A DNA stretch of 64,000 nt from Pavona decussata. Lineage: Eukaryota. Positions 7,211-58,900 of this stretch are shown piece by piece; position 1 is the stretch's first letter, and each line of letters opens with the position of its first letter. The stretch covers positions 310,001-374,000 of the forward strand of contig CDRNST010000165.1 of NCBI GenBank assembly GCA_977016875.1. Reading direction: 5' to 3'. Both the position numbers and the translations under genes were made by a program. The notes under the pieces were generated by a model that did no database searches, was not told where the DNA came from, and saw nothing but the letters and a program-made list of their open reading frames with translations.

Positions 7211-8473
7211 TGGATTGCCAAAGCTTATTTTTTTTTTTATCTACAGATTTTTATGATTTTAGGCTAGTCTCCGGGAAAGTAAGAGTTTATTTACTTTATA
7301 AAAGATATAATTATAGTTTAGTAAGTAAATGTTAGCTTGCCATTATCGTATCCATCATTTGCTTTCTTATAAAAATAAACGTAAATCAAAAAATTGAAGA
7401 AAAAAGTGTTTTTGTCATCATTTAACAGGCCCAGAAGGGGTGTTTGGGGTATATGGTATCTTGAGTGTTTTTCAACAAAGTATTCGGTATTTTTTCGGAT
7501 AAATATGGGTATCTAATAATAAAAATAAGCGAGTATTTTGTAGGGTATTTCGGTATCCCTGGCGACCAACCGCTGGCCAAATATCCTGAGGACTCTGGGT
7601 ACGAGATTGTGCCAAAATATCCACCACTAAGAGCTAGCAGGCCGGGTGAAAACAAATTTTAAAACTTGGCGGTGATCCTGTTCGTAATGGCGTGATCGAT
7701 TGGGTTTATTCTGTTGTAGCATTGTAAGTCTACTCCAGTCCACAGCCAGTCGAACACCCTCAGTATGTTAACCCCAATTTAGGGTGAACAGGCGGAAAAA
7801 CGCGCGAAAGCAAGTCACGATTGGTTTGGACATCACTACTAATTTGTTGAGGAATCAGCGCGAGTTTTGATAACTATTTATAAATCATAAAAAAAGAAGA
7901 CAAAGTAAAACGAGAAATTATTTAGGACACTCAAAGGAAAACTGCTCTGTGAGTGACATTACTTTCTTCAAATTCAACCTCAGCAAAACTTGTCAAGAAA
8001 ACGTATTAAACCAGACAAGCAGGGAATGATCGTTTTCCACTTCGAAAAGTGCCCCGTTAAGGCGTAAAGCACCCGAAAATGATTTTCGGTGTTCCTCAAT
8101 TTTGGACATCAAAAAAGTCGCGTAATTTTCCCCGATAAATTTCGGGGCCTCGAAAGCTCCGGAAAGGCGTTTTAGGGAACTTTTTTCTTTTCCAGTTGAG
8201 TTGGAGCAAGGCTGCCGGGGCACTATTAAGGTATCTAACACGAGAATTTGAATTAGTTGATAGATATCAGGCTAAATTCGAGTTAAAACTTAACAGAAAT
8301 CGCTGAAAGTGGCACATTTACATCCGTTAATAGGCGCAAGAAATTCGTGTTCATTTGAGCTTAGACTTTCTGTCACTCCGATAGCTGGTGCAAAACGCGG
8401 AAAACATAAAACCGGAGTCAAGCGCAGAAAAACAAGGAATCTTAAGTCAGGAAAACGTTCCAACACTACCAGG

Positions 8474-9451
8474 CTCGGGAAAACATAAAACCGCGGACCT
8501 GTGCCAAGCGCGGGAAAACATAAAACCGCCGAAGCGCGGGAAAACAGAAAACCGCCGGCCTGTGCCAAGCGCGGGAAAACATAAAACCGCCGACCTGTTC
8601 CAAGCGCGGGAAAACTTAAAACCGCCGGCCTGTGCCAAGCGCGGGAAAACATAAGACCGCCGGCCTATGCCAAGCGCGGGAAAACATAAAACCACGGCCC
8701 TGTGCCAAGCGCGGGAAAACATAAAACCGCGGACCTGTGCCAAGCGCAGGAAAACATAAAACCACGGCCCTGTGCCAAGCGCGGGAAAACATAAAACCAC
8801 GGCCCTGTGCCAAGCGCGGGAAAACATAAAACCGCCGGCCTATGCCAAGCGCAGGAAAACATAAAACATCCGCCCTGTGCCAAGCGCGGGAAAACATAAA
8901 ACCACCGCCCTGTGCCAAGCGCGGGGAAACATAAAACCGCGGACCTGTGCCAAGCGCGGGAAAACATAAAACCGCAGACCTGTGCCAAGCGCGGGAAAAC
9001 AAAACCGCCGGCCAGTGCCAAGCACGGGAAAACATAAAACCGCCGACCTGTGCCAAGCGCGGGAAAACATAAAACCGGCGGCCTATGCCAAGCGCGGGAA
9101 AACATAAAACCACCGCCCTGTGCCAAGCGCGGGAAAACATAAAACCGCGGACCTGTGCCAAGCGCGGGAAGACATAAAACCGCCGACCTGTGCCAGGCGC
9201 GGGAAAACATAAAACCGCGGACCTGTGCCAAGCGCGGGAAAACGTAAAACCGCCGACCTGTGCCAAGCGCGGGAAAACATAAAACCGCCGACCTGTGCCA
9301 GGCGCGGGAAAACATAAAACCGCCGGCCTATGCCAAGCGCGGGAAAACATAAAACCACCGACCTGTGCCAAGCGCGGGAAAACATACACTCGTCGACCCG
9401 TGCCAAGCACGGGAAAACATACACTCGTCGTCCCGTGCCAAGCGCGGGAAA
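8474..9451. repeat. 35-bp minisatellite array (about 28 units)
   Basis: Consensus TGCCAAGCGCGGGAAAACATAAAACCGCCGACCTG repeated head-to-tail. It explains the spurious repetitive ORFs at 8290-9674. Confidence 0.97.
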
Positions 9452-10119
9452 CACACGTACACCTAAGCGAGTGATGGGGCACGTGTTTCCCTCCTGACCA
9501 GTGCACTCGCTTTCCCTCCCTTTCTTGAGTAGGGCCTCGGTGGGATCTCTCTCCCTGGCACGGATGGATACCGAGCCTGTTTATTGGCAAAAAACAGCAC
9601 GTTCCCTTCATTGAATAGGACATTCTGCAATAGTTTTTTTGAAAAATTGTAAAGCCAAACCGCAAGCAAAACAAAGCAAAGGCAATGAAATACGTGTCAC
9701 CAAATAAGATACTTTACTGTACAAAGTAAATTTTATTCCATTCGTTTTGTTTAGCGGCACAAGTCTTTATCAAAATATTATATCGCTACCTTGCGTGTGT
9801 TTTTTTTCTCTTTTCAAAATTATGACATGACTATTGCACGCGATGAAATTCTACGGACAACTCAAGGAAATTAAAAACACAAAACAATAAATAAAAAAAA
9901 AGCGTAAGGGACGTACTTCGCACCACTTGTTAAAGACCAATAATTGCCTTGTTTTTTTCTTTTCCTACGACAAAGTATCACCGCCGGTAGAAGAATTAAA
10001 ACTCAACATTATACGTTCTCGTTTTTGAACACCACTAACGTATGACAACGTTATGTTTGGAGCGAGGGTGTGACAGGTTTGCGTGACAGTACTGCGTGAC
10101 GAGGTGGAGACTTCGACGG

Positions 10120-13100
10120 TCAGGTCCTTCGGCTTCTTGATGTTGATTTAGAATGAGTAACAAGTGTTAAGGAAAGTCAAATTCATGGTGAAATGGCGTG
10201 ACTTTCGGTGCCTGGATTCTCTCCGTATTCTATACGATGGAGACTGCCAGGTGCATTCGAATTTAAAGACGCCCCCCCCCCCCCCCTCACCCACCCACCT
10301 TTGCGACTATGCGCGGTTTATAACTATGAGGGGAAAGCTGATCTCAGAAAGGGCTCAATGTTGGAATTCCAAAAGAAGAAATTGGGGGTAACAACGCATT
10401 TTTCAGAGATAATTAAGAAAATGTCAGGCATTGTTACATGCTTTAAAAGCTTTTTAGAATTCTTGTTGCTTAATTTTCTCTGAAAAATGCACGATTATCC
10501 ACTATTTTCTTTTTGGATTCAAGTAGTCCTTGCTAAGATCTGCTTTTCCCACATAGTCATGATCTGGCACAAAAGTACTTCTGGAGGCACCAACGAGTTG
10601 CACCGATTGATTGATCCCCACTTCTATCTCTAATACACCAAACAATTCATTCAAAACTCTACTGGTAACACATGGTTAGCTATATTATTGGCTGAAGAAT
10701 AAGGGAAGCGGAGGTATATTTTCTGAAAGGATATTGTTTTTTGGATCGTTCGTCCTCCTTGGCCTCGTCATCTTTGACTTCAACGTGACGCGACTCTTTC
10801 TGCAACGCACAAAAGCAACTATCTTTACTCAAAATTTCGTTTTATCGACGAATTTGGTGAGGTAATTTGGTCAATAATTTGGTTAGAGAGCTGACGTTTC
10901 GAGCATTAGCCCCTCGTCAGAGGGAAACATGGAATTGTGGGTTATGTGTGGTTTATGTAGTGAGCAGCAGTAATAGCGTATCTACACTGCTCACTTTATA
11001 AACGACACACAACCCAAAATTTCTTAATTCCCTCTGACGAAGGGCTTATTGCTCGAAACATCACCCCTTAATCTCTTTAACCTCACCAAACCGGTTGATA
11101 CAACGAAATTTTCTTTGCAATTTGCCTAACGAGCTTATTGAAAGAACCTTGCTCAAATTCTCTCCTTCCTAGAGGCAGACAAGTGATATACCTAATATGT
11201 GGTTCTAACGTTTGAGTGTGTGTAAAGCCATTAAAATGAAAGCCACCGAGAAACCATTTGCAATGGTGGAGTTTATGTTGTACAAAGTGGTTTCAAGTTT
11301 TGAGTTTGTGAATGAAATCCTAAAGTGTGACCATTCAAATGAAAGCTACTAAGTAGTACTTGTGGTGTTGTTTATTACTCTGTACAAGGTGGTTCTATTC
11401 TTTGAGTTTGTGGATGAAATCCAATTGTGACCATTCAGTTGACAGCTATTGAGCAGAACTTTGTCGTCGTGATCTCACCACTAGAGTATTACCTTTTTAC
11501 TCGCCGCTGTTTTAACTTCCTTGTCTTTGTCCCGTTCTTTATCTTTGTCTTTATCTTTCTCCTTATCTTTCTCCTTTTTGGCCGGCGGTGAAGCGTCGGA
11601 TGCTGTTTTTCGTACAAGTTTCACTTTCGGCTTATCCTATCAGCATCATACAATGAAATGTTTCAGTTTTACTTGGGAGTTTCCTTTGCGTCGTCCCATT
11701 AACACTGAGCTACAATCGTGGGAAAAAGTGCTAAATTCTACCTTGACTTCACTTTCCTCCCCTCCTCCACTATCAATGTTGAGTTTTAACGGTGACCCTT
11801 TACCCATTATTCTTCGTGGGAAATCCAACATTGAACAAGAGGGGGGGGGGGGGGGGGGAAGGTGGGAAACGACAAACCAAGACTTAAACATACCTAGGCA
11901 ATAAAAATTGCTAGACCACCAATAGACCATCACTACCTCTAAGAAAAACAAGGATCTACTTGTAGTGTAAATGTGTGCCGTTTAGAATCTTATGAACAAC
12001 AAGCTGATAAAACAAAGTCATCCAACTTCACGGTTGATGCGGTTTCTTCAGAAATTGATGCCTGTGTACCTTAAATAATATGGAGCAAGCTAAACAGACA
12101 ACCCACTCAAGGAATGTTTAACTCGCATTTTATGTCCAGAAATTACTTTGGGTTCGTCAAATTTAACAGAGTCATTTGCCATTGTCACGTTGTTTGACAG
12201 AATTACTGAAGTATAGCTGAGGACTGGGGCGAGGGGGACACTCTATGATGCCTATCATAAAATGTATGCACCTTATCAGCGTGTATTTCTACATTCCGCC
12301 CCAGCTCCCCAGACCGTAGTGACAGTTTAGCATTGCTTACCTCACTCTTGACCTTGGTTTTGCTCTCAGATCCGTGCGAATTCGACGTCTTGGAAACTAC
12401 AACGGTTACGTCGCCATCCTCTCTTCTTCTTTTAGCTTCCTTCCCTTCAGCGGGGTCCAATGACGACTACAAGTCAGAAACCGGAAATTTAGTATTTTGG
12501 AAATTTTAAAATTCTCAATCTTATTAATAATTCATGAAGAGAAGATAAAGGAAATTATTAGCGTCAAATGTGACCTTAATTATCATAAATTTGGTGAACT
12601 TTTGCTTTGAATTTCACCAAGAATTATTACTGGTTTGAGAAGCTATATCAAACACTCGAAAGAATGTTTCATCCTATTTCCAAACACCTCGAAGTTGGTT
12701 AAAAAAAAACTCGACTGCACCTCGTTTATTCAACTCACTTCTCGGTGTTTAGGAGCAAGTAAGCCACGCGCGCTGTACTCACACCGCTCGCTTGCCTCAC
12801 AAATGTTTCTTCCGTTCTCCTCCCGACGAGAGAGCCTGGTGTACGTTTCTCAAAGCTCTCAATACAATATTTATTTTCCCATATACACAACATTTACAGC
12901 ACAAGATAAAAAAAAATGAAGAAAATTGATGAAAGAAGATAACTGGCGAGAAAACCTAATTAAAAATGACTGAATGAATTCTTATATACCGCACATATCA
13001 CCAAGTCTCATGGCGGTTTACATTTCTATGGGGTGAGATCGGACGTCAGCATGTGAAGGCGCCTCTGGCAGCCGCTATCGGTCCTTATTAGATCTCACCC

Positions 13101-16100: not shown

Positions 16101-19100
16101 GCCTCCTGGAATGGTGAAACTCCTGGGGTCCGTTTCTCGAAGGTCTCGAGAAATTGCCGGGCCCAAAATGTGTCTTAGGTAATTAATGCTTCTCAACAGA
16201 AGTCAATTTTTAATTGCTTTGAATGCTATACTCTAAAACCTTGATGATTCTATAAAAACATTGGCCAAGTTCACACTAAAAAATACCATGCCTGTAATCA
16301 ATGAAAAAAGGTTTAATATACTTATTGGGTCCGGTAAGTTATCGGGAATTGCGAGAAACTTGCCCTGGCCTGGCGGGTGTCCTGGCCTTTTGCTGAATGT
16401 TCACAACTGCCATTTGCTAACAAAGCGTGTCATTCTCCATCATTCACTCACCTGCTGTCAGTCTTCTTGCTGGTGGATATGGTGGACACATCATTGCCGT
16501 TAGTACTGCTTTCTGTTTTGACTGTGGTGGGTGTTTTTGTTCCTTTGGAGCTGCCAGAGGAGGCGGCGGGTTTAGAAGCTTGTTGACTGGAGCTACCGCT
16601 TGTATTAGCAGATCTGACATTTAATCCAAAATGGGATTTAATTTTAACTTTACTTGCGGGGAAGGAAGTCACTGCTTTATAAAATATCTTTACTTTCGGA
16701 GAAGGCATCTCCGCTTTGAAGAAATCTTTATCTTCGGACCTTTACAGTAGTTGACGAAGGTGGCCAGTTTCATTGGTTTGTAGGTAAAGCTGTGTGATTG
16801 GGACGGACACGTAAAGTGGCAATAGTTTAGAAGGGTGCTGATTTGGGAAGGTGTGTGGGAGACATTAGCTGAGTTGTTCCAAACCCAATTAGCACTAATT
16901 CCGGGTAAACTGTAAACAAAACCTATAACTCTTTAGTTGTCATGGTAATTAGCCTGGATTAGCGCTTATTGTACTTTACCCAACCCGGCCCAGAGTCGTA
17001 AATTTAATATCAAAATAAACAATTTTCTCACTTGCTACTCGGCGCATTCCTGCTTGGTGAGTCAGCAGGACCTGTCCGTGATGAGGCCGCGCCACTTGGG
17101 GTACTGGTGCCCGATGGCTTGTTATTGGATGAGCCTGCATTGGATTTACCAGCGGCCTCTTTTTGAGACACAGATGTGTTCTCGGTTTTTGTCGTGCTAG
17201 GACTGGGAATGAAAATAACAAATTATTTAATGAACAACGGCTGGCGCTGGTCTTATACGCCAAAATGAGAAGTTGTGTTTTATTATTCTATTAGGGTGGA
17301 ATTATACGTACCTCGAAGATTTTGAACCATCTTGCTCCTTCTTAACGTTCACTAAGAAAAAAGAAAGACGTTTTACTTTAATTTTTGACAACTTTCTGCG
17401 CCAAAATCTCGACGAATCAGTCCAAATTACAGTAGACAAATGAGCCCCACGATGGCTGTAATTCAAAAGCTACTTTCCTGAGCTAAAAATAAGCTCTTAG
17501 ATTGATGAACGTTGGCCCTACTTGGATCTATTTCTAATGCTACTGAGCAATAGGAACTCAGCTGTATATCCAACTGAATTAAATTCTTCTCGTTGAGCAA
17601 AGGGAAAGCATCACCCAACCCGGAATAAATTAAAACTAAAAGGTATTAACCTTTTGAAGTTGATTTACACGAACGCAGACAGCAAAGACATGAATACACC
17701 AAAATTCAAGGATAAACAACGAAATCTCAAACCTGTTACTTTGGGTTTAACATCAGATTCACTCTTAACGTTTTCTACAAAAAACCAAGACAAATTGATT
17801 TTCATCAGTTGATGGAGGTGGGTGGGAGGGGGGGGAGGGGTGGGTCGAGTCCTGCAAAGGAGAATGGACTGATGACATGGTTTTCATAGCATGTTGGCAG
17901 TGCTCGTATTATTTCTGATTGGAAAATAAAAGTTCAGCAAATTTTTGGGTTCTTTGCCAATGACTTTTTAATAAAAAAAAAATTAACTTACTTGTTGAGT
18001 CTGCGTTCGCTGACGAATTCGTCTGAGCTTCCTAAAAGAAAAATCACGGTCATTCCGTCTGTTGTCCATCTTTTATTTATTTTTGTTTTTTGTTTTTTGG
18101 CACCCAACATGCATTTTCGGTTTGCGGTGGCTACCAATTCAGTTGCACCGGCTTTTCCCTTCCAGTATAAGGCTCTATCCACAAATGACCCTGTTATTAT
18201 TTGGCTGGGAGTGCAGAAAAAATTCATGTCTTAGTCCAGGTTGTCGCTTTTAGAGATTTTTTACACCGTACACAATTTTACAAAAAAACAAAACGAGTCG
18301 GAGACTAAACACCCACTGGAATAAAACAACAACAAAGCCGCTACAGTCTGTTTGGCAATGCCGTCTTTGTTTGTTTCTTTCTTTCTTTCTCACCAAACTC
18401 ACCGTTTTTTCTTGCTTCACAGTTACAGCCTCGTTCTGGTTTGTTGCCGGAGCAGCTGCAGCGGGAGGCTGGGGAGAACAAAATCGTTTCGTATGCTAAG
18501 GAAGCTGTTGAACTAGAAATCTTTGAGGATTCTATTTAAACTAAGCTGGAACTTTGATCGGTTAACTGAAGAATAAGCAAAGAAATATTGCAAAAATTTA
18601 ATGTTGAAGCAGTTCTTTACCTTTTCCTTGTGATGGAACTCACTCTCTACAACCATATCTCGCTTTTTCGCCTTCAAACGACCAGCATACCTAAAATGGA
18701 AACAAACAAACAAACCCTCAAATCATCGTTTTTCCTGCTTTCCATAAAACGTTTGGGTAGAAATGTCAAAACAACAAAATTCATTCACAGCAGTAACACA
18801 CACATGAATCTAGTTTAATGACCTTAGCTCCCACAAGTCTCCTGTAGCTCAGTGGTAGAGCATCCGAACTAGTAATCGGAAGGTCTTAGGTTCGACTCCT
18901 GTTGGTACAGCTTTGATCTTTTTTCAGAGTATCCTTGTGTCACCGACTAAGAAAAGACATCTTTGTCATCCATTCGTATTGTTCCGCCAGCTGTAAACCG
19001 ACAAGCGCCGATTCTGTTGAAGACTTGCCGCCGGAATTCGTAGCAAGTGTACAGCATGCTGACAATTTAACGTTACTTTGTAGACCGACGAAACACTGAC

Positions 19101-22100
19101 TGTCCGCCTCGTGCTGAGCATGCCCGCCCGCTCTTACAATAATTATGAATTCTCTTACCCTACAGCAAGAACATAAATATCCTGACGCTTCTCCTTCTCC
19201 TCTTCACAGATCTTGTCGATTCTTCTTTCCAAGGCTTGACCAAGATTTAAAACTTTAGGATAATACGGTAAAATCTGCAAAAACGAGTGAGACGTAATCA
19301 AAAAAAACCCTCAACCGCAGTGGAACTTCATACCCCCACCCTCACACATAGCTGGAGACATACCTTTGTTAAAACCATGATTGTGTTTCGAATCTGTGTA
19401 TAATCCTTTGACTCCAAACACACTACAAGAGCCTGAAAAAACAAAGCAAGAAGAAGATCAATGGCCACACGGACTGTTTCTTTAGTTTCTTGTCACGCTA
19501 AGTTTAATTTGTTCCATGCCCAACTTGCAATAAATAGAAACAACTTCAAATCAGTTTTCTAATTTTAGAGCCTTTAACTCTGTCCTTTTGGGAACAACGG
19601 TTGAAAGCGTCGCAATAGAAAACTTAAGTTCCAGTCATAATTGGTTAAAACGATTGTAATTTACTGGGAAAAAATGTTCAACCGCATTCACAGCTAGCTA
19701 AAACACTGATCAACAAACTCGACCGTAAACAGGGGTCTTTCCTCAACACTACACCAAAAAGACAACAAGGCAAACACGACTCACTAGAGAAAGCTGACGC
19801 CCATGACACGGCTTCTGATTCTCAACAACCAATAAAAAACTAAGGCGCAAACTCACAAGAAAGAGTTTCCACACGAGTTTGTCATCGCGAGTGTTACAAC
19901 TGAAAACCACAAGCCAAGCCAGTTATCACTAAGATAAACCGCCATACATCACACAAAACACATTTCTATGACAAGTAAACACAAAATTTACATGGTAGTG
20001 AAAAAGGTAAACATACAATACCTTGGTGAGTTTATATTGCCACTTGTGGCAGACATGTCGATAATTCTCGTAATCCAAGTGGTCGGCTTTGTCGTTGTTT
20101 GTAGCTCTTAAAACTGTAACAAATCCTGGATAACTGCCACATTCCTGTCAAACACAGAACCAAAAACAGATAATTCTTTACAGTGTGAAATGTTGTTGTC
20201 GATATATGTGTGCAATCTGTTAGTCTGCAAGTAACATGTCCTCTGCAAGGCTGTTGCCTAAGAAACTTTTCAAGGAGCCCTCAAGGCCAAAAGCCAAGAA
20301 GTTGAGAGCCCAACATGTGAAGTGTTAGGTGCTGTGTTAGGTAGCCCCAGGCTACCTTGCTCTGCGATACCGATGCATTGCTCTACCATTTTGTGAATTC
20401 ACATTGTACCCGTAGAAGAGCCCTGCCTGGCAAGGGTCGGGATATTTGCAAGAAATGCCTTTAAAACACTCTGCGCGCTTAACTGACCTACCTTCTCATA
20501 AGTCTTCTTATCGCCATGCCATCTCATTACTATTTCAAGCATTGAACATAAAAATCGACCTACAAAGATAACGAGATGAGATGAGAACGCACGACAACAA
20601 ACACCAAGAAGCTGGACGCATACAAGGATAATCTCTAAAGAGAATCCCTTGGAGCCCAAAGCAACATGGCGGGCCGCCATATAACTGCTTCTAACGTAAC
20701 ACACAGGGTGAGTATTTCACTTTAATGTGATGTTCCTAAACACTTACCGTATCTACTGGCTTCATTTTCTGTACAGCTTGCTACCGTGTATGAAATGTCT
20801 GAAAACACCTACAATGAAACAGAATGACAAAACGCCCTCAACACCACAAAAGCTTTCCTTCTTTGTTTGCTTGTTTGTTTGTTTGTTTGTTTTTTTTGCG
20901 TGATATGATTTGTTCAGTTTTGGAACTGACAAAGGATAGCGACAAAGAGACAGAAAAGTCAGCAAACACAGTAGTTATTTACTTACTCTGTCGAAGCAAA
21001 GTAGCGTTGAAAAGTTGGGTGTTTTGAGGTTGTGGAGCATGTGAACAAACTTGGCGCAGTACACAGCATCACTGGCTGTAAACACACATCTCGGAAACAT
21101 GCAAAGCTGCAGAAACTGTGTGATGGTTTCACTCTTTGTCGCTTCTACAACACAAAAGAAAAACATCAAAAGAGTTTCTTTTGGCAAAATATTAATATTA
21201 TTACAGTCAAACTCTTAAACTTGGCGAGCCTACAGTCATACTTTCAATATGGGCAAGTTCAGGTAGATGGTCAAAATATTTCTTCTCTCAAAAGTTAAAT
21301 ATTCCATAAGTTTTAGTTCCAAAAATAAGCCAGTTAAATCAGTGGAATATCCACAAGTTAACCAAGCTATCCATCTGTGCACTGTCAGTTTGACATTTTT
21401 ATCCTATAACTTGAAAAAAATATATCCAAGTTTACAGTAGTCAAGATACTGTTCTAGCTGTTGTCTAAGACAATCACGGTGATGTATTCTTTAAAGAACA
21501 TGCATCTTCCTTCACTCAACTACCCTTTGTGACATCGCTGTGTTTATCAGCCACAACTTACTTGCAGGCAGCCACGTGTCTCTCTCATTCTTCAGTGAAG
21601 CCATCACTCTCTGGCCGTGCTCCTCCTGTTGTTTCAGTTCTTCTTTCAATTTATCGGCTAAAAGCGAACATCTTTCCTTTTCCTTCTTCTTCTTGCTGAC
21701 AGGCTGGCAATTGGAACAAAATATATTTTAAGTTTTCCGTATGATGTTCTTCATACTTCAACGATAAGGGTGTTTTTTATCAGTCAATTCTTGAATAAAA
21801 AAACTGGCAGAGTTGAAAAAGGATATTCTTATCTTGACATTATGGCATCACTTGACCACAACTACCAAAAATATGCTAAATAAAGAGCTGCAACAGAGTA
21901 TATCCTGCTTATGGAGTGTACATAAATGTCACAGTTAACAAAAAATATGCTTCCTTTGGTTACTGTTTGTTTAATGCGGATTTTAACAAAACAAACGACA
22001 GTTGAAGTCACGATTAAGATGTCCGTGTCTAGTGGTGATTTTTACAGCAAAGGTGGAGGGATTTGAAACTTATGAAACTGTCCAGTTAATAAAGGGTATC

Positions 22101-25100
22101 CACTTAATACAGTCTTCACTTAATACAGGTTTGACTGTATTTGAAAAGGAAAACTAAATGAATTCTGGTAGTTGTAGTCAAACACAGCCATCATGACAAT
22201 AGCCTATTAAAATTCACAGTGACTGTCACAGTGACTGTCACTGTTAAGAAGGGATATTCAGTTTGGTTTTAAATGTCAGAGTTTATGTGGTACTGTAAAG
22301 CATAGTAAGGATTGAGCCATACCATATCTTTGTTGTCTTCTAACTGTGCGAGTTGTTGCTTCAGTTTATTCAATTCTTGCTCATATCTTTCAGATGGGAC
22401 GTAAAGATCAAACATGGACAATGCCCAAAATGTAACATACAACTGAGGGCTGTAATAAGAAAAAAAGACTGTTGTCATGATTACTATTATTGTAACCTTC
22501 AACTGACATTTTCACACATACTTGCACATCATAAAATTATACTTTCATTGGCAGAAAAAAACTGCCAAACTACCCAAGGCTACATATAACTACATGTAAC
22601 TACACAAAACATGTACAAGAAACAGATTAAATCGCCATGGCTTAGCGACAGTGATCATCATCTCAGGCTTGGCCGTAGATTTAGAAATGGTAAATGGAGT
22701 GAAAGTGTAAAATAATTTAGTTTTCAACAACAGGTCTTTATAATATAATGAAAGTAATAACATTACATTAAATAAAGAAGACAAAAAAAAAAAGGAAAAC
22801 AGTAAAGGAACAGCTATAAAAAAAAGTTACAGAACAAAACAAAGAACTAAAAAGGTTCAAAAGGTTAGAGAAAGAAAAAAAAAGGAAAAACTTTACCTGA
22901 TGCTGTTCCAAACTTTGGGCGCTTGTAAGAGCCGAGCACTTTGAAATACAGGTTCCATAACGAAATTCGTTGCATCAATGTAACACTGGAAAATTTGCTA
23001 ATAACACACAAAAAAAACTAGAGTAAGAAAAGAGTAAACATTTGTGGCAACTAGGAATTGCCATCTGAAACTTTTGATCCCCCAACACTTTCCTTTCAGT
23101 TTTTTTGTGTAAGCTTTTTCTGTTTATATCTTGTTATATTATTCTTGTGGTCAAATAAAATTGGTTTGACACATGACAGTAACTGTCACTGATAAGCGTC
23201 AAAGAATTCATTGGTTCACAAAAAACTCATACAGCTGTAGTAATCTTATTCATCCTCATTATCAAGTGTCATAAATGAGTTTAGCTGTCGGTTGTACTAG
23301 ACATACATGTATAATAAACTAATATTAAGTTCGTGATAATTTTTAACTCACTTTTTGCTGAAGTTGCTTTCCTTTCGGAGTCTCAATGGCTTTCTTTAAC
23401 TCATCAAACTTAATCTGGCAGAAAAGAAAAGTCATTTAAAAGGCATGTCCACATTACTTTTCTTTATAGTGGTAATGCATCAGTCAATTCCAGCGGTGCC
23501 CATCCCCCCCCCGGGCAACCCCGGGGCATTTGCTCACGTTGTCAGTCCCGGCGGCGGGGCATTCGTAATTTTATCGCGGTCCAGGGGCTGGGCATTTGCC
23601 TACCCCGGGGCGACCCCCGGGCATTTGACACACGTGTTTTCGAAAGTGCTATGGAGGAATTCATCGGCAAAAGACGAGGCGTTTGTTGAGGATTGGCTAG
23701 TAGTTCATCAGGGACTACACAAACTTGTGGATGTTTTTTTAAAAGGTATGTTTTCTCAATTTTAGATATTTCTTCATTAGTTGTAAGCATATAGATATAA
23801 AAAGCAACAACTTGAACTATACTTTGTTTATCACATATCGAGAAGTCGGAAACAATCAATGTGAACACGACTACAGCTGTATTTCCCATTTCGCATTCAA
23901 AACTAACCTAGCATTTTTAAATTCACGAAAGTCAACCTGGAGTGCACTTTAAAATACTTTAGGCTTGCGAATTCATATGATGCGATCTTCAAGACAGATC
24001 AATGCATCGTAAATAGAAAACGAAGCCTGCAAATACAGGCGCCTATCATCGCTCGCAGCAGGAGGGAAGTCCGCCGCAGTCCCAGCACAGTTTAAGCTCC
24101 CTACCTTTTTAGCAAAATATAAAAAGATAAATATAATCATAATCAACTAACACGTCCTGTTGTCCTTGAAGTCCTACCGTTGCATTAAAATGCTGAAAAG
24201 TGGAAAGTTTTATTCACTGATAATGATTAATATAAAAATTGAATTGGTGTTGGAAGGCGACGATACCGGGGGCGGGGCATTTGCCCTCTTCCTTCATCCC
24301 CACCCCGGGGCATTTACACAGCTTATGTGTCCCCACCCCGGGGAATTTGCCCATTTTTTTAAAAAAAATGTTAATGCCCGGGGGTTAGCCCGGGGGGAGG
24401 GGGGGGGATGGGCACTGCTGGAATTGACTGGCGCATAAGCATTCATTACCAAGGCACTGCTCTGACGTAGCATTTCATCTCAGCCAAGAGACTCTTCAGA
24501 GACCTTTAGAATTTCGAAATGCCATGTCAGACTAGCCACAAACATTTCACAAGCACGTATTGACAAGTTTTCTATTCTGTATTGTATAAATTGATGTTCC
24601 CATGCTAAAGAGAGTGACAGTAAATACAGGGAGCTATTTGCATTTGACTAGAAAGAATGCATTCCTAACTGCATTTGGAGTCAAGATTGTTTGGGACAAT
24701 GAATGGATCTTGGGATGCATATCTGGCATCCCTGGCATATTTTGCAGGGGCGGATGACATCATCACCAACTTGGCAAAGGAGAGAGAGCTGGAGATTGAG
24801 ATCATCACATGCACTCCATAATCTTTGATTATTACTACATGTAGTTCTAAATGTATTCTTACTAAGCTCACCTCTATTTGGTGAACAAACATGGGCCTTG
24901 AAAGAAAAAATGCCACATCAGGAGTAAGGTGATATGATTGCCCTAGAACATCCAGTGATGGCAGATGGGATTCATACTCTTCAGAAGTTAACTGAGTGGC
25001 AAGGAAGCCTCCAAACTGCACCAGTGTATCTTGACACTGAAGGAAGAAAAACACACATATTTAGTGGCTAGAAAACCTCCATTACTGTGGCCTTTACCTT

Positions 25101-49900: not shown

Positions 49901-52900
49901 ACAAAGAAATGAATTGAAGCAGCATAAGGCAGTGAATACTGAAAGAAAGCTATAAACTAAACAGAGCAGGAATCTGCAGTCACAGGGAGGCTCACTTGTC
50001 TCGCACGCGAGCTGCCACCAAGGAATACCTCCCTGTACGACACCAATTTCTTTTTACTTTTACTTTTTGCTAGAATAACATGAATGATGGATAAGAGAAT
50101 CAGCTCTACAGTGTATGTGTTAAAGGGAACCCATGAATTTCCTACTGAGCGTTAGCCTAGTAAGGAAATGGCAAACTATATGAGGCAAAGAAAAAATCTT
50201 TTACTGCGGCGGGAATCGAACGCACGACCTCCGGATTTCAGGTTCCTTCTATGGGTACCAGAGTAGAGACGACGTAAAACAAAAGAAACAAAACAACTTC
50301 AAACAAGACCTAACCACAATAGGTCGAAAACAGTACAAATACAATGCTCTCCGGTACCTGCAGAAAGACCTGGATTTCACCAACCACTGTTCTACCGACT
50401 GAGAATTAGCTCTGAACTATTATAAAGAAACTTGAAACTGTTTTTCGGTGTCCTAGATCACCATGTGTACAAGCAAAATGTAGGTGAATACATTACCTTC
50501 TTCACAATTTCTTCCGCTGTATCCCCGCTGGCACTCACAAACGTAGTCAAACCAGTAATCCACACACTTGCCGCCATTTTTACACTGCCCAGCTGCACAC
50601 TGGCCTTGTCGAGGGCAGCTGTCAGTAATGCCAGCGGACTCTGTAGCAGAAGTCGGGTCCATTTTCTTACCGTTGATGAACACATTTCGCATGCAGCCAA
50701 GGAAGTCATCAGTTTGAATGTGCTGTGCAGGATGACTCAGCGCTTGGTCGAAGTCTTTTATTCCACCCAGATACAGTGGCGAGTTCAACAAGTCCAGTTT
50801 CCTGTAGAAAGTCAGAGTCATGTGTTAGATTTCTGAAAAAGAGTTAAGTTAGAAGAACGTGGAAATATAAAACCTTATTGAAGTTTGTAGATATTGATAA
50901 CAGTTTAAAGAAGAACAAAACAAGAACAAGAACAAGAACTCTTTTTACCCTAGGACAATTGCGCAGTGGAACAATCTCCCACCAGAAATTACAACATCTA
51001 CTTCGCCATGTTCATTCAGGCAATCTTTGTGTGATCTTACATATTAGTAATTTTATGTTGTTTTATTCATTGTTGTAATCTTTATTATAGTTTAAAGCAG
51101 AGTGAAGACTTAATTGGTAAATAAAGGTGGAAGCAAAATCTTAAGCAGAAATTTAACCAAAGACAATACGTCGACGAATACCAGTTTCAAGTGGGTCTGA
51201 AATTTGGGCGCGGACTTTTCAAACTGAATAAAGTCAAGTTTCAGAAACAGGTGGCAGCCCAATACCAAGGATCTCCTATACCTGCCACCCACCCCTCCCT
51301 TCCCTATCTACTTACTGTAACTGTCCCTGAGATGTCACTGTCACTGGAACAGACCAATCAACTGACACTTGCCCAACCTGAAAATAATCCAAATATAGCG
51401 TTAGCAACGGAATGCAAATAAGGATAAATACACGTAAATCCTACGTCATCAGGCAATTCTTCTTCATCTTGTTTCGCAACTTTGTTGCGCCGTTGCGACA
51501 CAAGTTGCACGATAACATGACCTCAAATGAACATGTCTCGCAACGTTTTTCTTAAAGTCAGTGTTGCACGAAGAATCGTCTTCTAGTTCTCGCAACGATG
51601 GTAACAACAAGCATTTGCGAGACATGATCACTTCAGGGCATGTTGCAAAAGAAAAGTTTCGTACAACTTGTGTTGGAACACAATTACCAAACAAGTCGCT
51701 AAAAAATTGCCTTATGAAGCATAGGCTTAAAGACCTGACAGTTTCAATCCTAGAATCTCAGTTGTTATGGGTTTAAAAGTCCTGACGAAGCACCTGAAAA
51801 GCGCAGTACTAAATATCTTAGTTAGCTCTAATTAAAACGTCCCATTCTAATCGCCTCGAGTTCAATTCGAGTTTCAGGTGAGAATCAATTCCGCACTCTG
51901 TTCGACGTTTATGCTAATCAAAAGCAAAGTGCATTAGTTGTTGTCTGTGTGGATTCTGGGATGATTTACTTCGATTTTGCCAGTTTTTGTGGGGCTTGAG
52001 TCACATTTCACGCAACTGGAATGCGGTATATACACTGAACCTTCCACAAAAAAACCTTACTAGTGTTTATTCATGCGGAAATGTTACCAATCGCAAGCGG
52101 TTTTCAACTGAACCTAAAAAAAAAGCAAATACTCTGACCAATCAGAACAGACGCAAATAGCGCAATGAACCAATCAGAACTCGAAACAAATACGTGTAAC
52201 CGGCGCCAAGAGCGGGAAAACGCGTGCGACCAAGTTTGAGCAAACCACGATTGGTTCTGGCCAATTAAGACTCTGGAATTGGATTATCCAATAATCCAGT
52301 TTTTAATAAAGGGTTTGTAAGCCAAAACAAAAGTGTTGTCAGTTTGATTGTAAAAATGTAAAAGAAAAGCGAACAGAAAATCCACTGACCTTTCTGTTTC
52401 TGATTGCCGTGACCCTGTGCCACTGTTCATCAGCTACAAACTTGTCTGCTTCGACAACAACAGCAGTCTTGGTATCTCCGAGGTTAAAGGACATGCGAAT
52501 CTTTCCTTCGATGATCTGTATGGCGATGAAATCCGAATCCGTCTTGTTCTGCCCATCAGTGTTGTACAGCAACAAGCCGTTATTTTTGGACGTGGAGAAC
52601 TCGAATGTGATGTTGTTGAAGTCACCTTGTTGCAGACTCTCCAGCGTAGGAAGTTGTAGATATGCAGCGGAATCAAACCCGACACATGCGCACTGACACG
52701 CTTGGTTGGTAGCGCAGCTACACTTGGGCTGAGCCCATTGAGCAGATGTGGAAACGCGACAAAAGTCGAAACCAGAGGAGCAGTTCTTACCCAGGTATCC
52801 CGGTTTGCAGTCGCATTGGTAAGTCCCGACAAGATTCTTACAGGTTCCGCCACTCTGACAAGGATTCTGTGCACACTCGTTGACATCATCAGCACAAGTC

Positions 52901-55900
52901 AAACCTGTAAAACCGGTTGGACACTGGCATACAAACGCAGAGTCTTTATCTTGGCATGTGGCTCCGTTCTTGCACGGTTTTGAGTTGCAACCTTTCTTGC
53001 TTATTTCGCAAGTCTCGCCAACGAAACCCGGTTTGCACACACAGCTAAAGCGCCACTCATAATCTATCGATAGGAAGATGACAGGTACGGACTCAACAGT
53101 GGTTTGAGACCCCAGGGTTTGAATATAACTCGTGCACTCGCCTCCATTGCGACACGGACTGCTGGCTGTGCATGGAGTGTAGTCGACATTTTGGATTTGA
53201 ACTTTGCCGTTTCGTTCCAAATCATGTTTGCGATTCCTCAGCAAGCCAGAAAGACGTTCTCGTGTCATATAATTAAACGGTTGAGTCCCTTTCGCGGCCA
53301 CAGACAAATCCACGAGGCCATCTCCGATAGACTTCACACTGAAGAGTTGCGCGCTGTGTTCCGGTTGTGTAATACGGTTGATAGCATCCAGGAACAACTG
53401 GTACGACTGCGTGAGAAAGAGCTCAGGACTTGTGTTCTGTAATCGCACAGTTATGCTGCTGTCGAAAGTTTTAGAGTTGAAGGCAACAAATCGGACTTTC
53501 ACATCATAGGAAACCGCCCATCTCCCATCAGAACCGTTCACTCTCAGATCCAGCTCAGCGCTGCCGTCATACCTCCTGTTGGTCATCAACATACAGCTCC
53601 GAGGAGGAAAACTAAACAAGTTGTTACTATTCCGAATTATCTCGCACACTAAGACGTCATCCACGTCCGGGTCTTCAGGTTGTACGTTTGCTATGAACCC
53701 GGATGCGAAACTGTTGTTGCTGTTCACGTGCACAACACGTGTAGCCTGAAGAGGTCTGTTATCATTCTCATCCTGGACCAGAATGTTGCAGTGCGAAAGA
53801 GCGGATTTCTGTGGGGAGCCATTGTCTGTTATTCGGATAGACAAGTTGTAAGATGAAGTGGCCTCCCGGTCGAGTTGCGCGGTGGTCGTAACCAACCCAG
53901 TTCCACTGTCTAACTGGAACTTTCCGAAGTTAGTCCCAGTGATGGCAAAAGTGAACGGCCCTCGGTTAGGGTCTATATCAGGGTCATGCGGCTGCAGTGT
54001 CATAACATGAGTGCCAGCGCGTTTGTTTTCTCTGACCATACCCGTGCAGTTCGCAAAGAGGCGTGGCGCGTTGTCGTTCACGTCATCAAGACGGACAACA
54101 ACAGTAGCGTTTCCTGACATGGGCGGTCGACCCTGGTCTGTAGCAGTGACGGTCAGATGGTATTGTGGGACCGCTTCCCTGTCCAGCCTCTTGCCAGTCG
54201 TGATTGCGCCAGTATCTGCATCAATGGTAAAGACGTTACCGATGTTACCAGTCAGAATGCCGTATGTTATCCTCGCTGCAACTGGATGTTTGGCAAAGTC
54301 ATCATCTACCGCTGTAACATTAGCAACAAACGAACCTGGACCTACATCTTCCTTCACTCTCTCGTTGTACACATGTTGAAGGAACCGAGGCGCGTCATTG
54401 GCGTCCGTGACTGTCACAACGATCGTTGCTAGGTCACTGGTATCCGGTGTCACGCTTGTCTGTAACGCGTTTTTAATTAGAACCTGAAGCCGTACAATGC
54501 CAGCTTGCTCACTGTCCAATCTTCCGGAAACGCTTAACACCCCTGAGGAGTGGTCCAAGCTGAATCCTTGGTTGTTACTCTCACCAACCAGAACAAAAAC
54601 TACCTCACCGTCCGGGCCCTTGTCTTTGTCGGTTGCGTAAATCCGAGTCACAGACTGCCCCACAGGTGCGTTCTCGGCCACAGAAGCTGCAAACAAAGAC
54701 TTGTTGAACTTGGGTGTGTACTCATTCACGCTGGTCACATGAACCAAAACTTTAGCGCGTGGCCGCGATTCTAACTGTGGATTTCCGTGATCTTTAGCAG
54801 TGACAGTCAATTCGTATAACTCTTGGATTTCATAGTCAAACGGTGCTTTGCTGCTGACAACCCCAGTGGTCGCATTTATTTCAAATAACCCCAGGACACC
54901 CACGCCAGTGATGCTGTACTCCACTCGACCCCCGTCACGCTGGTCGGGATCTAGCGCCGTAACGGTAACAACCGGGGCCCCGGGTGCCGTATTTTCCGGT
55001 ATGTATCCATGATACACTTGCTCTGTGAAAACAGGTTGGTTGTCATTTGCGTCTAAAAGCGTAACACGCACGACGGCTGAAGCTGATCGAGGATTTCTAC
55101 CACCATCAGTCGCCACAACGTTCAGTATAATTAATTTTGTCAGTTCGTAATCCAAATGCTTCTGCACAAAGATAGAACCATTCCTTCGCCCAATTCCAAG
55201 ATAACCTGGAGGATCGCTGCTCTCTATATCGTAGAAAACTTGCCCGTTTGTCCCAGAGTCCTGGTCGGAGGCAGAGATTCTAACCACTTGTTTTCCTACA
55301 GGCAAGGTTTCCAACGGATTGGCTTGATACTGGTGACTTGAGAAGACAGGTGCAAAGTTGTTGGGTTCAATCACTTCCACGTACACATTGGCGCTGCCTT
55401 CCATAGTAGGATGTCCCAAGTCTTTCGCCCTGACCTGTATGTGGAACACTCCCAAACTACTGACCGAACCCGCCACTGTGACGTTACCAGTATCCGGGTC
55501 GATGTTAAACAGCGATGATCCATTCCCGCTGACTGTCTCATAGCGCACGCGTGCATTTGCGCCATCATCTTGCTCATCAACCGCCTCCACGCGGCCAACA
55601 CTCTCCCCAATTCCTGTGTTTATTACGACGAAGAAGTTGTACGACAGGGACGTGAATACAGGGGAGTGATCGTTAGAATCGGTGACTTCGATGGTGACAT
55701 TAACTGTTGCCTCGTTGAAGGGTGAATACGAATTCCTTGCTTTCACTGTGATATTGTACAGGTTCTCGTTTCCAATTCCACTTGGCTTCTTATAAACAAG
55801 CACTTTGTTAAGGTGCAAGGTACCAGTTTGACGATCTATGGTGAAAACGTCGCTTGAGGGAGATGGCAAAATAGAGTACAGAATCTCCGCATTTGTCCCC

Positions 55901-58900
55901 ACGTCATCATCGAGCGCAGTAACATTCATCGCCACGGAGTCGATAGGCAATTTCTCCCGGATTTTCTGTGTCAGATGATCCGAGAGGAATCTTGGTGGGT
56001 TATCGTTGATATCCAAGACGGTAACAGTGAAGTTGGACGTTGTTTTATGTAGTGAGTCATCAACCGTCACTTGTAGAATGTACTGAGATTTTTCCTCTCG
56101 ATTCAAAGCCTTCTGTAATGTCAAACTACCGTTACTTGCATCAAGGTGAAACACACTGTCTGGATTTCCACCCACAGCAAAACCAAACTGCATTTGAGCG
56201 TTATTTTTCGTGTCAGCATCTGTTGCGCTCAACACCGCAACTTGGTACCCCCTTGAGACATTCTCGTAAACAGATGCAAACAGTGGACCTACGAAAACTG
56301 GAGCGTTGTCGTTAATATCTTGTACGGTTACTACAACAACTACTTCACTTGCCATGGATCTGTTTGCCACGTCTTCAGCGCGAACCTTGAACGTATACGC
56401 TGCAGTGTTCTCTCGATCGAGTTGGACCTTGGTAGAGATACGCCCAGTCTTGAGGGACACATCGAATGCTGAACTTGCCTGGCTGTTTCCAGGGACCATT
56501 TTGTACTCAGTCTCAGCATTGGACCCTGAATCATCATCAGCTGCGTGTAACCAACGAACGGTTGTGTTCACAGGCATTTCCTCTTGGATTTCCACTCGAT
56601 AAACGCTTTGATTGAATAAAGGAGCATTATCGTTCTCATCAGTAACTGTCACATGGATTGTCACAAAGCTTGTGAGTGGCTGACTGCTTCCATCCCTCGC
56701 ACCGATAATGACATCATAGCTCATCTGTTGCTCAAAGTCCAAGTGTTTCAGGATCTTCAACTCTCCGCGAACTTTGTCCACTTCAAAAACATCTCCGATG
56801 TTGCCCGCTGCGATGAAATAAGACGTGTGCCCGGTAGCGTTTACAGTGACAAGTTCTGTCCCGAGTGGAGCCAGCTCGGACACCGTTACATTCACATCCT
56901 GGTGTTGGAATACTGGGAAGGAGCCCTGCACCACAGTAATTCGCACGTCAGTGGTAGCGGAGCGCTGAGGTGCATTCACATTAGTAGCCTTCACTGTGAA
57001 GACGTATGTTGCTTGGCCAGGGGGCACAGTTTGTGCCACGGTGATGATCCCTGTCCTGGGAGCAATTTGCAAAACAGAAGGAAATGACGCACTTGTTACT
57101 GTGTATACGGACTCAGCATTAGGGCCTATATCCTCATCTGTGGCAGAGACCATAATAATGAAGGTTCCTGGTAGAGCCCCTGGGGCAACTGATGCTGTGT
57201 ACAGGTTAGACTTAAACACTGGATCAAAGTCGTTAGCATCTTCAACAGTCACAAACAAAGTGGCTCTTGCTTCTCTTCTGGGATTGCCTCCGTCGGTGGC
57301 CAAAACTTTCAGCTCATACGAAGGCGTGTTTTCACGATTAAGCGAAGCTGTGGTTTTTACTTCACCAGTGTTCGGATGAATCTTAAACAGGTCAAAAGTT
57401 GTTATCAGAGAGTATGTTATTTTTCCATTAAGCCCAGCATCAGCGTCTGTTGCAGTGACTTGCAGGACGGGTGTGTCTGCAGGGGAGTTCTCCACCACTG
57501 ACCCCTTAAACACGTCCGGCTGGAAGACAGGCGGATTGTCATTTCTATCAGTCACCTTCACTATGACTACAGTTTCACCCACACGGGGCGGAGTTCCTCC
57601 ATCTTTTGCCTGCACTCGCAGGGTGTACAGCGCCTGCGTCTCTCTATTCAGAGCATTCCTCAGTCCTATTTGGCCAGTCTGACTGTCAATGGTAAAAACA
57701 CCTCCATCATTGCCACGGATAATATCGTACGTCACAGCACCATCTTTGCCTTCGTCACCGTCCACAGCTTTGACCGTGATGACATTGGCTTCCACGTGAT
57801 TTTCATAAACCTCTGCAGGATAGGAGGTTTTGGAGAAGGTGGGTGTGTTGTCATTGATGTCGCGTAACACAATCTTCAAATTCTCATCTGAGAACTGTGG
57901 CGGTGTCCCTAGATCAGACGCACGGATGACCAGGGTGTAATTGGGTGTGGTTTCACGGTCCAGGGATCTTATGGTGCTCAGGACTCCATTCATGGGATTC
58001 ATCTCAAATCTGCCATTCTCGTTTCCAGCCACAATGCTATAGCGCACTTCTGCATTGCTTCCTTGGTCTCTGTCAATTGCTAAAAATCTTACAACTTCAC
58101 TTCCAATTGAGATATTTTCAAAGATTGGCACCGTGCTCATTCCTGCCTGGAAAATTGGAGCATGATCATTAAAATCATCCACTATGACCGTCAGCCTCAT
58201 CTCTGCACGCTTTGACGGGTGACCCTGGTCAGTTGCAATCACTTTGACAACATACCTGTCTCTGACCTCACGATCTAAACTCCCTGATACCGGCAATACA
58301 CCATCACTTGCACCTAAACTGAGTGGAGCTAAAGCATCAAGCTTGACCAGGCTGAAGGTGATCTTGCTGTTACTTCCTGCATCTAAATCAGCCACCATGA
58401 TTGTTGTGATGATATCACCTGTTCTGGCATGCTCTGATACATGGGTGATATTACTGGATATGAAAGATGGGCTGTTATCATTGATATCTGTTAATGTCAC
58501 CTGAACTGTTGCTGTGCTGGATAGCTGCATTGCCACAGGTATCGCCTGATCTCTTGCCATGATGCTCAGTAAATAAGAACTCTTTTTCTCACGGTCAAAT
58601 GTTCTAAGGTTGTAGATAGTACCATTTGGATAGACTGAGAAGGTGCGGTCACTGTTTCCAGAGAGTATTGAGTATGTAATTAATGCATTGGTACCAAAGT
58701 CTTTATCAGTGGCTGATACAGTTACAATGCTACTGTATGGTACAGTGGCTTCAGAGACACTCACAGCGTACTCACTCTGTGAAAACTGTGGTGGGTTATC
58801 ATTCCTGTCCAGGACATTCACATAAACTTCAGCATAGGAGGACATGGGAGGGTTACCATGGTCACTAGCAGAAACATTCAAAATATAGACTTCCACTGCT

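Follow-up and report, generated by a model that had tools for sequence, protein, structure and literature searches.

A hairpin with two minimal hammerhead motifs in a THOC2 intron of Pavona decussata as the probable relic of a Penelope-type retroelement insertion

This study concerns a 64,000-nt stretch of DNA from the coral Pavona decussata (GenBank assembly GCA_977016875.1, contig CDRNST010000165.1, positions 310,001 to 374,000 of the forward strand), here called the window, and within it a 282-bp fold-back at 10831-11112 that lies in an intron of the THOC2 gene. Each arm of the fold-back carries a hammerhead ribozyme motif, an arrangement that an earlier note on this DNA had proposed from its letters. 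We put the probability at roughly three in four that a single ancient retrotransposition gave rise to the fold-back, now decayed, and that the element concerned was a short, non-autonomous retroelement of the Penelope-like element (PLE) type, which bears a minimal hammerhead ribozyme (min-HHR) motif close to its 5' end.

Architecture of the fold-back

The repeat search resolves the fold-back into three nested arm pairs of 79-85% complementarity. Both strands are predicted to fold into one long rod, as had been anticipated, at -137.2 and -144.0 kcal/mol (z -15 and -17), a stability matched by none of 200 dinucleotide shuffles. The window has exactly two matches to the pattern CTGANGA-N-GGGC-(3-6)-GCTC-GAAAC, one on the minus strand (10896-10920) and one on the plus strand (11034-11059), with a chance expectation of 0 (100 shuffles). 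When the cleavage triplets are included the minus-strand motif ends in GAAACGTC and the plus-strand motif in GAAACATC, the triplet having changed from GUC to AUC in one arm. The two motifs face outward, one per arm, and on this layout repeat search, folding and pattern match all agree with the earlier note. Its short central loop is not upheld. The arms abut directly at about 10968-10971, and comparison with the family consensus described below shows the apparent 19-nt loop to be surplus length of the longer (right) arm only. The left arm is 76-87% identical to dispersed single copies of the same repeat, and the arms are 82% identical to each other over aligned bases, with several indels. The right arm ends at the same short 3' terminus as the left, so the window copy has two short ends (Table 1).

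Table 1. Features of the fold-back and its THOC2 surroundings, in window coordinates
Feature	Position	Strand	Description
Left arm	10831..10970	-	5'-truncated family copy, about -47 to +95 counted from the C of CUGACGA; ends at the short 3' terminus
Right arm	10971..11112	+	Second family copy, truncated at its 5' end (about -63 to +95) and lying head-to-head to the left arm
Minimal hammerhead motif	10893..10920	-	CUGACGA-G-GGGC-UAAU-GCUC-GAAA-CG-UC; sense to THOC2; passes the min-HHR descriptor
Degenerate minimal hammerhead motif	11034..11062	+	GAAACAUC; antisense to THOC2; loop 2 of 5 nt
THOC2 intron containing the fold-back	10800..11492	-	693 nt, GT-AG; joint 10799/11493, CT..AC on the plus strand
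THOC2 exon	10735..10799	-	65 nt, between GT-AG and AT-AC introns; RNA joints on both sides
AT-AC (U12-type) intron	10157..10734	-	578 nt; joint 10156/10735, GT..AT on the plus strand
Upstream THOC2 exon	11493..11635	-	RNA contig piece without differences

A dispersed, 5'-truncated repeat family

With the 282 bp as query, the 602-Mb genome to which the window belongs gave 535 candidates. Every scored candidate besides the window itself matches just a single arm, in one orientation the left and in the opposite orientation the right, which identifies each arm as a piece of a dispersed repeat. The extended pattern CTGACGA-N-GGGC-(3-6)-GCTC-GAAAC-R-TC has 207 exact matches in the genome as against 0 for the reversed control, a number that is a lower bound on the size of the family, and the consensus of these matches is CTGACGAAGGGCTAACGCTCGAAACGTC.

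Family coordinates take the C of CUGACGA as their origin and run in ribozyme sense. The 3' module (+29 to +150) includes a 3' hairpin, UUAUCAAC/GUUGAUAA, and copies fall into two 3' end classes, one terminating at about +100 (...AAACATTCG) and the other at about +150 (...CCCCCTTATC). The 5' ends vary, with a sharp drop in conservation between -7 and -8: 54% of 140 sites retain -8..-1 and nothing further upstream, while 18% continue into a longer version that extends to about -225 in this genome and to about -560 to -660 in three metagenome copies. Ends at -7/-8 are seen, for example, in loci L033, L039 and L041. Family copies have no poly(A), no simple repeat at the 3' end and no open reading frame (ORF). 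Single copies dominate the set selected by BLAST, and one of them (locus L034) is flanked by a target-site duplication (TSD) of 13 bp; across the family TSDs span 8-14 bp. The combination of 5'-truncation, shared 3' ends and TSDs points to a non-autonomous retroelement inserted by target-primed reverse transcription. Five copies lie on one contig (G000:C144 2081620-2266623; loci L003, L013 and L029) with homology well beyond the element, which places them inside a larger segmental or tandem duplication whose spacings are about 11 kb and about 100 kb.

Recurrent head-to-head pairs

An inverted copy lies directly upstream, head-to-head, at 8 of 21 motif sites (20 loci of this genome), and the junctions are all different. 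Genome-wide there are 22 pairs in which both cores are exact, with 6-26 nt between the cores and again a different junction in each; some of these are perfect palindromes with both arms reaching -8. Fold-backs with the spacing of the window copy (91-121 nt between exact cores) were not found in the genome. Public metagenome contigs were also scanned with an exact 28-mer, which yielded 127 sites on 120 coral-associated contigs, of which 74 are single, 52 head-to-head (46 distinct) and 1 tandem. The resulting head-to-head share of about 40% is that of young copies, as loci picked by exact motif are, and of coral-associated samples. The possibility raised in the earlier note that the layout is a one-off local inversion is not borne out by a share of this size.

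Within a pair the arms are on average 96.5% identical (three pairs 100%), compared with 92.6-92.8% between copies, and long arms are no nearer to other long arms than to short arms, which leaves no arm-specific lineages. Similarity within pairs without such lineages implies that pairs do not amplify as units; each pair arose from one template or was homogenised. TSDs of 9-14 bp enclose the whole pair at 12 of 14 young pairs with enough flank, and in this genome a 9-bp TSD surrounds the pair at locus L032. A duplication around the entire pair shows that both arms were laid down in one integration. Most pairs (16 of 19) are asymmetric, one arm running to about +150 and the other to about +100. 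Judged from these sequence comparisons, the fold-back layout is a recurrent product of insertion, neither a replicating family nor an accident. The multicopy palindromic family that had been envisaged is thereby confirmed as far as recurrent pairs with TSDs are concerned, but the palindrome arises anew at each insertion and is not itself the unit that replicates.

This last point bears directly on whether the fold-back could be a miniature inverted-repeat transposable element (MITE) or foldback DNA transposon, that is, a non-autonomous palindrome with terminal inverted repeats for arms, amplified as a unit. The palindromic layout, the short total length (about 265-280 bp), the flanking duplications and the stereotyped arrangement of a long and a short arm would all suit such an element. 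However, most copies are single 5'-truncated arms, the inner junction differs in every pair, TSD length is not fixed, and the outer ends are not equivalent, one carrying an extension of ~50 nt. The closer similarity of pair-mates than of long arms to long arms largely refutes amplification as a unit, and we regard a DNA transposon as very unlikely.

A minimal hammerhead motif

In the descriptor published for the min-HHRs of metazoan PLEs, the core is CUGANGA...GAAA...UH, helix III and loop 3 are missing, one nucleotide between A9 and G10.1 is left unpaired, G10.1 pairs with C11.1, and the 15.2-16.2 pair is palindromic, which lets two min-HHR copies build helix III together (PMC4209133). Such motifs do not cleave as single motifs and cleave weakly as dimers; they are reported in cnidarians and occur in large dispersed families with few mapping to full PLEs (PMC4209133). 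More than 6000 type I motifs in 16 families, mostly minimal variants, are known from the stony coral Acropora millepora (PMC7229834).

The consensus of the family described here, CUGACGA-A-GGGC-UAAC-GCUC-GAAA-CG-UC, has every listed feature of this descriptor. Both window arms keep CUGACGA, GAAA and UC. Both arms and the 207 genomic copies share CUGACGA-(A/G)-GGGC...GCUC, which supplies the unpaired nucleotide between A9 and G10.1 and the G10.1-C11.1 pair. The 15.2-16.2 palindrome (ACGU from GAAA-CG-UC) is present in the family consensus and in the minus-strand window copy; the plus-strand copy departs from the descriptor at this pair, which reads CA and has been broken by CpG decay. A scripted scan of 329 kb with the descriptor gave 30 matches, 29 of them in this family and 1 in another, compared with 0 in 20 shuffles. 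Helix I could be built in the longer version's consensus from 3 bp, a 4-nt bulge and 5 bp (GAUUCGCU with AGC-ACUC-GAAUC), and 88% of helix I cells are paired across 27 copies chosen without regard to the motif. The identification as a minimal type I hammerhead of the PLE kind with a palindromic stem III, already suggested in the earlier note, is on these grounds of motif and pairing well supported. Compared with the published min-HHRs of metazoan PLEs (Cervera & de la Pena 2014, PMC4209133), the coral family is alike in core, absent helix III, unpaired nucleotide and palindrome. It differs in helix II, which has 4 bp rather than the 7-8 bp of schistosome families, and in covariation, compensatory changes being reported within the published consensus families whereas none beyond shuffles occurs in the coral family.

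The single match outside the family lies at L042:3859-3886 (+), a min-HHR of different sequence (CTGAAGA-A-GGCA-GCAT-TGCC-GAAACGTC) about 900 nt from a family copy and on the opposite strand. Its presence shows that several min-HHR families with one architecture coexist in this genome.

Relationship to Penelope-like elements

PLE insertions are described as showing 5'-truncation and partial tandems, with an inverted and likewise 5'-truncated copy next to them and a tail of 30-40 bp at one end (PMC8557442). The coral family matches this architecture apart from its rare tandems and its longer tail. It resembles PLE insertions (Evgen'ev & Arkhipova 2005; Arkhipova 2006; Craig et al. 2021, PMC8557442) in 5'-truncation, in the head-to-head inverted copy, in the one-end tail, in the absence of poly(A) and in the hammerhead motif. 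It differs in being short (about 155 to about 800 bp), in having no ORF and in the rarity of tandems (1-2 cases), head-to-tail copies being seen at 1 of the 127 metagenome sites and once in locus L038. The suggestion in the earlier note of a Penelope derivative with inverted pseudo-long terminal repeats (pLTRs) fits this genome-wide anatomy.

A GIY-YIG search of the genome gave 933 candidates. Among 150 scored sites, 13 pairs lie in the order -/+ within 7 kb as against 1 pair in the order +/-, and -/+ pairs are head-to-head if the endonuclease is C-terminal. In canonical PLEs the endonuclease is C-terminal. PLE-type elements are abundant in this genome and frequently head-to-head. The -/+ pairs lie 0.6-7 kb apart (e.g. 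C88:3334481-3335341, C250:176927-178115 and C435:41446-42790), and tandem arrays of GIY-YIG sites occur on contigs C19 (period 6.8-7.2 kb) and C1115 (period 2.8 kb).

Non-LTR retrozymes offer a second comparison (Cervera & de la Pena 2020, PMC7229834; Li et al. 2026, 10.64898/2026.07.22.740005). Both they and the coral family are short, non-autonomous, endowed with a type I hammerhead and probably dependent on PLEs. Retrozymes, however, consist of 170-400 bp units repeated head-to-tail, their canonical hammerheads have helix III and contacts between loop 1 and loop 2, and they yield abundant circular RNA, whereas the coral family is dispersed, single or head-to-head, with a minimal motif lacking helix III.

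The 5' inversions of L1 elements reportedly arise by twin priming, a model said to go back to Ostertag and Kazazian in 2001. The same kind of relic might have been produced by a reverse transcriptase (RT) of long interspersed nuclear element (LINE) type rather than PLE type, the pairs forming by twin priming or snap-back synthesis. Variable TSDs and 5'-truncation go with target-primed reverse transcription in general, no PLE ORF is linked to the family, and the window contains LINE fragments, such as the ORF at 2119-2544, which has no Pfam match and which we take to be the C-terminal part of a LINE RT. Twin priming and the coral pairs also have in common an inverted segment within one target-primed integration and one TSD around the whole. 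In L1, however, the inverted segment is a different, upstream part of the template and the joined segments do not overlap, whereas the two coral arms represent one and the same sequence and share its 5' end. The 3' end has neither the poly(A) nor the simple repeat of a LINE, and the one-end tail and the min-HHR are PLE hallmarks. Taken with these features, a LINE-type origin appears very improbable.

History of the window copy

The preferred reading, a PLE-type insertion, would proceed most plausibly as follows. The element would have been mobilised in trans by a PLE reverse transcriptase/GIY-YIG endonuclease, which is the most likely mechanism. The second arm may have formed because both nicked DNA ends served as primers, or because the cDNA snapped back on reaching the template's 5' end, and the tail could be a by-product of the intermediate's resolution. 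The arms in the window derive from the longer version, truncated at about -47 and -63. Since insertion both arms have lost helix I, and one of them has also lost the 15.2-16.2 pair, mostly through CpG decay, the process that also accounts for most sequence variation in the family. The present-day hairpin is expected to make the pre-mRNA pair with itself over a long duplex, and it leaves the transcript when its intron is spliced out.

The entire fold-back (10834-11175) is present in contigs from two coral metatranscriptomes, where 24 of 342 bases differ (about 7%), and the flanking intron pieces in these contigs differ by 4-6%. Presence in a related coral makes the insertion older than that divergence, and an element divergence of about 7% against 4-6% in the flanks indicates no visible constraint. 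The high contig depth over parts of the window arms is due to other copies of the repeat.

Several observations weigh against the preferred reading. There is no convincing TSD around the window copy. The family tail is about 50 nt, longer than the 30-40 nt of the literature. None of the 21 ORFs of at least 300 aa in ~0.9 Mb around about 170 copies has RT or GIY-YIG motifs, and two long ORFs adjoining copies were negative in Pfam. No family copy lies inside a PLE pLTR among the about 170 copies examined, and none of the 100 listed motif sites is near a listed GIY-YIG site, among the matches listed. With no RT or GIY-YIG domain co-located, what ties the family to PLEs is solely its architecture and the type of its motif. 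Copies most often begin at -7/-8, which is the first base of helix I and not the predicted cleavage site at +28, a discrepancy that leaves the motif's part in the life cycle of the element unexplained. The selection of young copies by exact motif in coral-associated metagenomes also belongs here.

Further points concern the hammerhead itself. The Rfam hammerhead models (Hammerhead_1, RF00163 and relatives) gave no match at E <= 10 in the window from 10000 to 12000 or in the consensus copy L045:4500-4950, the only cmscan matches there being spurious plant-miRNA hairpins. The covariance-model check proposed in the earlier note was accordingly negative, which we attribute to a motif without helix III rather than to the absence of a motif. 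Helices I and II show no covariation, the one cell changed on both sides being at shuffle level; the rival hairpin fold is likewise without covariation. For the consensus monomer the lowest-energy fold is a hairpin (CUGACG with CGUCAG) in which the core lies buried, at -19.0 kcal/mol, while its hammerhead-like fold scores only -10.0 kcal/mol. Such a core-burying fold agrees with the published behaviour of min-HHRs, which do not cleave singly and cleave poorly as dimers (PMC4209133). RNA cofolding of the dimer gives an extended duplex, with no bearing on catalysis. In contrast to the identity of the motif, a catalytic function of the family motif is not supported by these predicted folds.

The missing TSD and the 82% identity of the arms would also be expected had the fold-back come about by a one-off rearrangement, whether a single copy was inverted and duplicated after its insertion, for instance by replication fold-back, or two insertions happened to land head-to-head. 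Against this stand the layout shared by about 40% of young copies, their whole-pair TSDs and their near-identical arms. As young pairs with whole-pair TSDs are common, insertion of the family routinely yields the head-to-head layout. The divergence of the window arms fits their age, the fold-back being shared with a coral whose flanks diverge by 4-6%. A local accident is in our estimation a distant contender. Similarly hard to credit is a programmed head-to-head dimer, in which a ~155-nt unit starting exactly at helix I is copied twice in about 40% of events, whether from the two nicked DNA ends or through snap-back, and its intronic hairpins are put to use by host or element. If true, the intronic hairpins might serve, for example, as small-RNA precursors or splicing modulators.

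Splicing context in THOC2

The gene is identified by Pfam Tho2 matches on the minus strand at 20975-21187 (E 1e-20) and 22269-22502 (E 5e-13). An RNA contig of 988 nt (X1 record 1, from a run flagged as probable RNA) joins 12340-12467, 11493-11635, 10735-10799 and positions at or below 10156 on the minus strand. The joint 11635/12340 is GT..AG on that strand, and the donor of the AT-AC intron reads ATATCCTTT. The fold-back intron and the AT-AC intron that follows it are both removed cleanly in the one RNA contig seen. The GUC-bearing motif is sense to THOC2, with its putative cleavage site 94 nt upstream of the 65-nt exon, and the fold-back ends 31 nt from the 3' splice site. The RNA joints thereby substantiate the geometry given in the earlier note, about 90 nt to the exon with the AT-AC donor and about 30 nt to the splice site. 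An effect of the hairpin on splicing, also proposed there, finds no such backing, the intron being removed normally in this contig and the element evolving no slower than its flanks.

Helix I of the minus-strand motif is down to about 2 bp, and the lowest-energy fold of this motif is a hairpin that buries the core. The suspicion that the window copy may be inactive through a weak stem I is probably right, stem I being lost and the triplet of one arm changed from GUC to AUC. Ribozyme activity of the window copy is unlikely on structural grounds. Self-cleavage in particular is very unlikely because each transcript would contain a single sense motif fully paired to its own antisense. The same pairing undoes the comparison with a viroid-like rod carrying ribozymes in both polarities, as published minimal hammerheads need two sense copies to act.

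Least probable of all is a functional RNA, either a viroid- or retrozyme-like element with active ribozymes giving circular RNA or an exapted hairpin that tunes splicing, is edited or feeds small RNAs: the predicted hairpin is very stable and close to the 3' splice site, the sense copy retains the full core and GUC and the element is kept in a related coral, but there is one sense motif per transcript where published min-HHRs are inactive as single motifs, helix I is lost and the core buried, the family is not tandem, the intron is cleanly removed, divergence is not below that of the flanks, and the differences show no A>G excess (in contigs without matched DNA, which are unable to test editing).

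Other features of the window

Two further repeats lie close to the fold-back. Within the AT-AC intron, 10314-10566 is a second hairpin-forming repeat with inverted arms at 10372-10420 and 10466-10514 and spurious plant-miRNA Rfam matches on both strands. Its summed contig depth of 10^4-10^5 in all four runs marks it as a very abundant MITE-like or fold-back repeat. At 11199-11470 there are about three copies of a ~100-bp unit (GTGGTTCTA...TTTGAGTTTGTGGATGAAATCC...), which in each run exceeds all other sequence in abundance by a wide margin (summed depth as high as 5x10^5), with many backward joints typical of tandem arrays elsewhere.

A 35-bp minisatellite at 8469-9451 (28 copies, 88% match) gives rise to long spurious minus-strand ORFs of up to 352 aa with FSRAWHR... 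repeats. An Rfam tRNA match above the gathering score (35.8 bits) lies at 18838-18910, and ARAGORN finds no tRNA anywhere in the window; the sequence is probably the tRNA-derived head of a short interspersed nuclear element or a pseudogene. Sequence resembling a tRNA (GTAGCTCAGTGGTAGAGCA...) also adjoins family copies in loci L008 and L010. On the minus strand at 52342-63999, a stop-free open frame of 3886 aa runs off the end of the window and may encode cadherin repeats.

Implications

The window hairpin is real but ordinary, a decayed intronic instance of known PLE-type repeats that adds a further family to them. Its novelty is low because min-HHRs in PLE-type repeats (PMC7229834) and inverted PLE insertions have already been published. 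A class of mobile element that is already known accounts for the feature as its by-product, and no new RNA replicon or regulator is needed. For surveys of such elements, the case shows that screens based on Rfam miss this class of hammerhead. How PLE integration makes inverted structures has been called an undefined step (PMC8557442). With its share of pairs, its TSDs, its one-sided tail of ~50 nt and its preferred 5' end at the start of helix I, the coral family is a compact, high-copy, ORF-less substrate for studying Penelope-type inverted integration.

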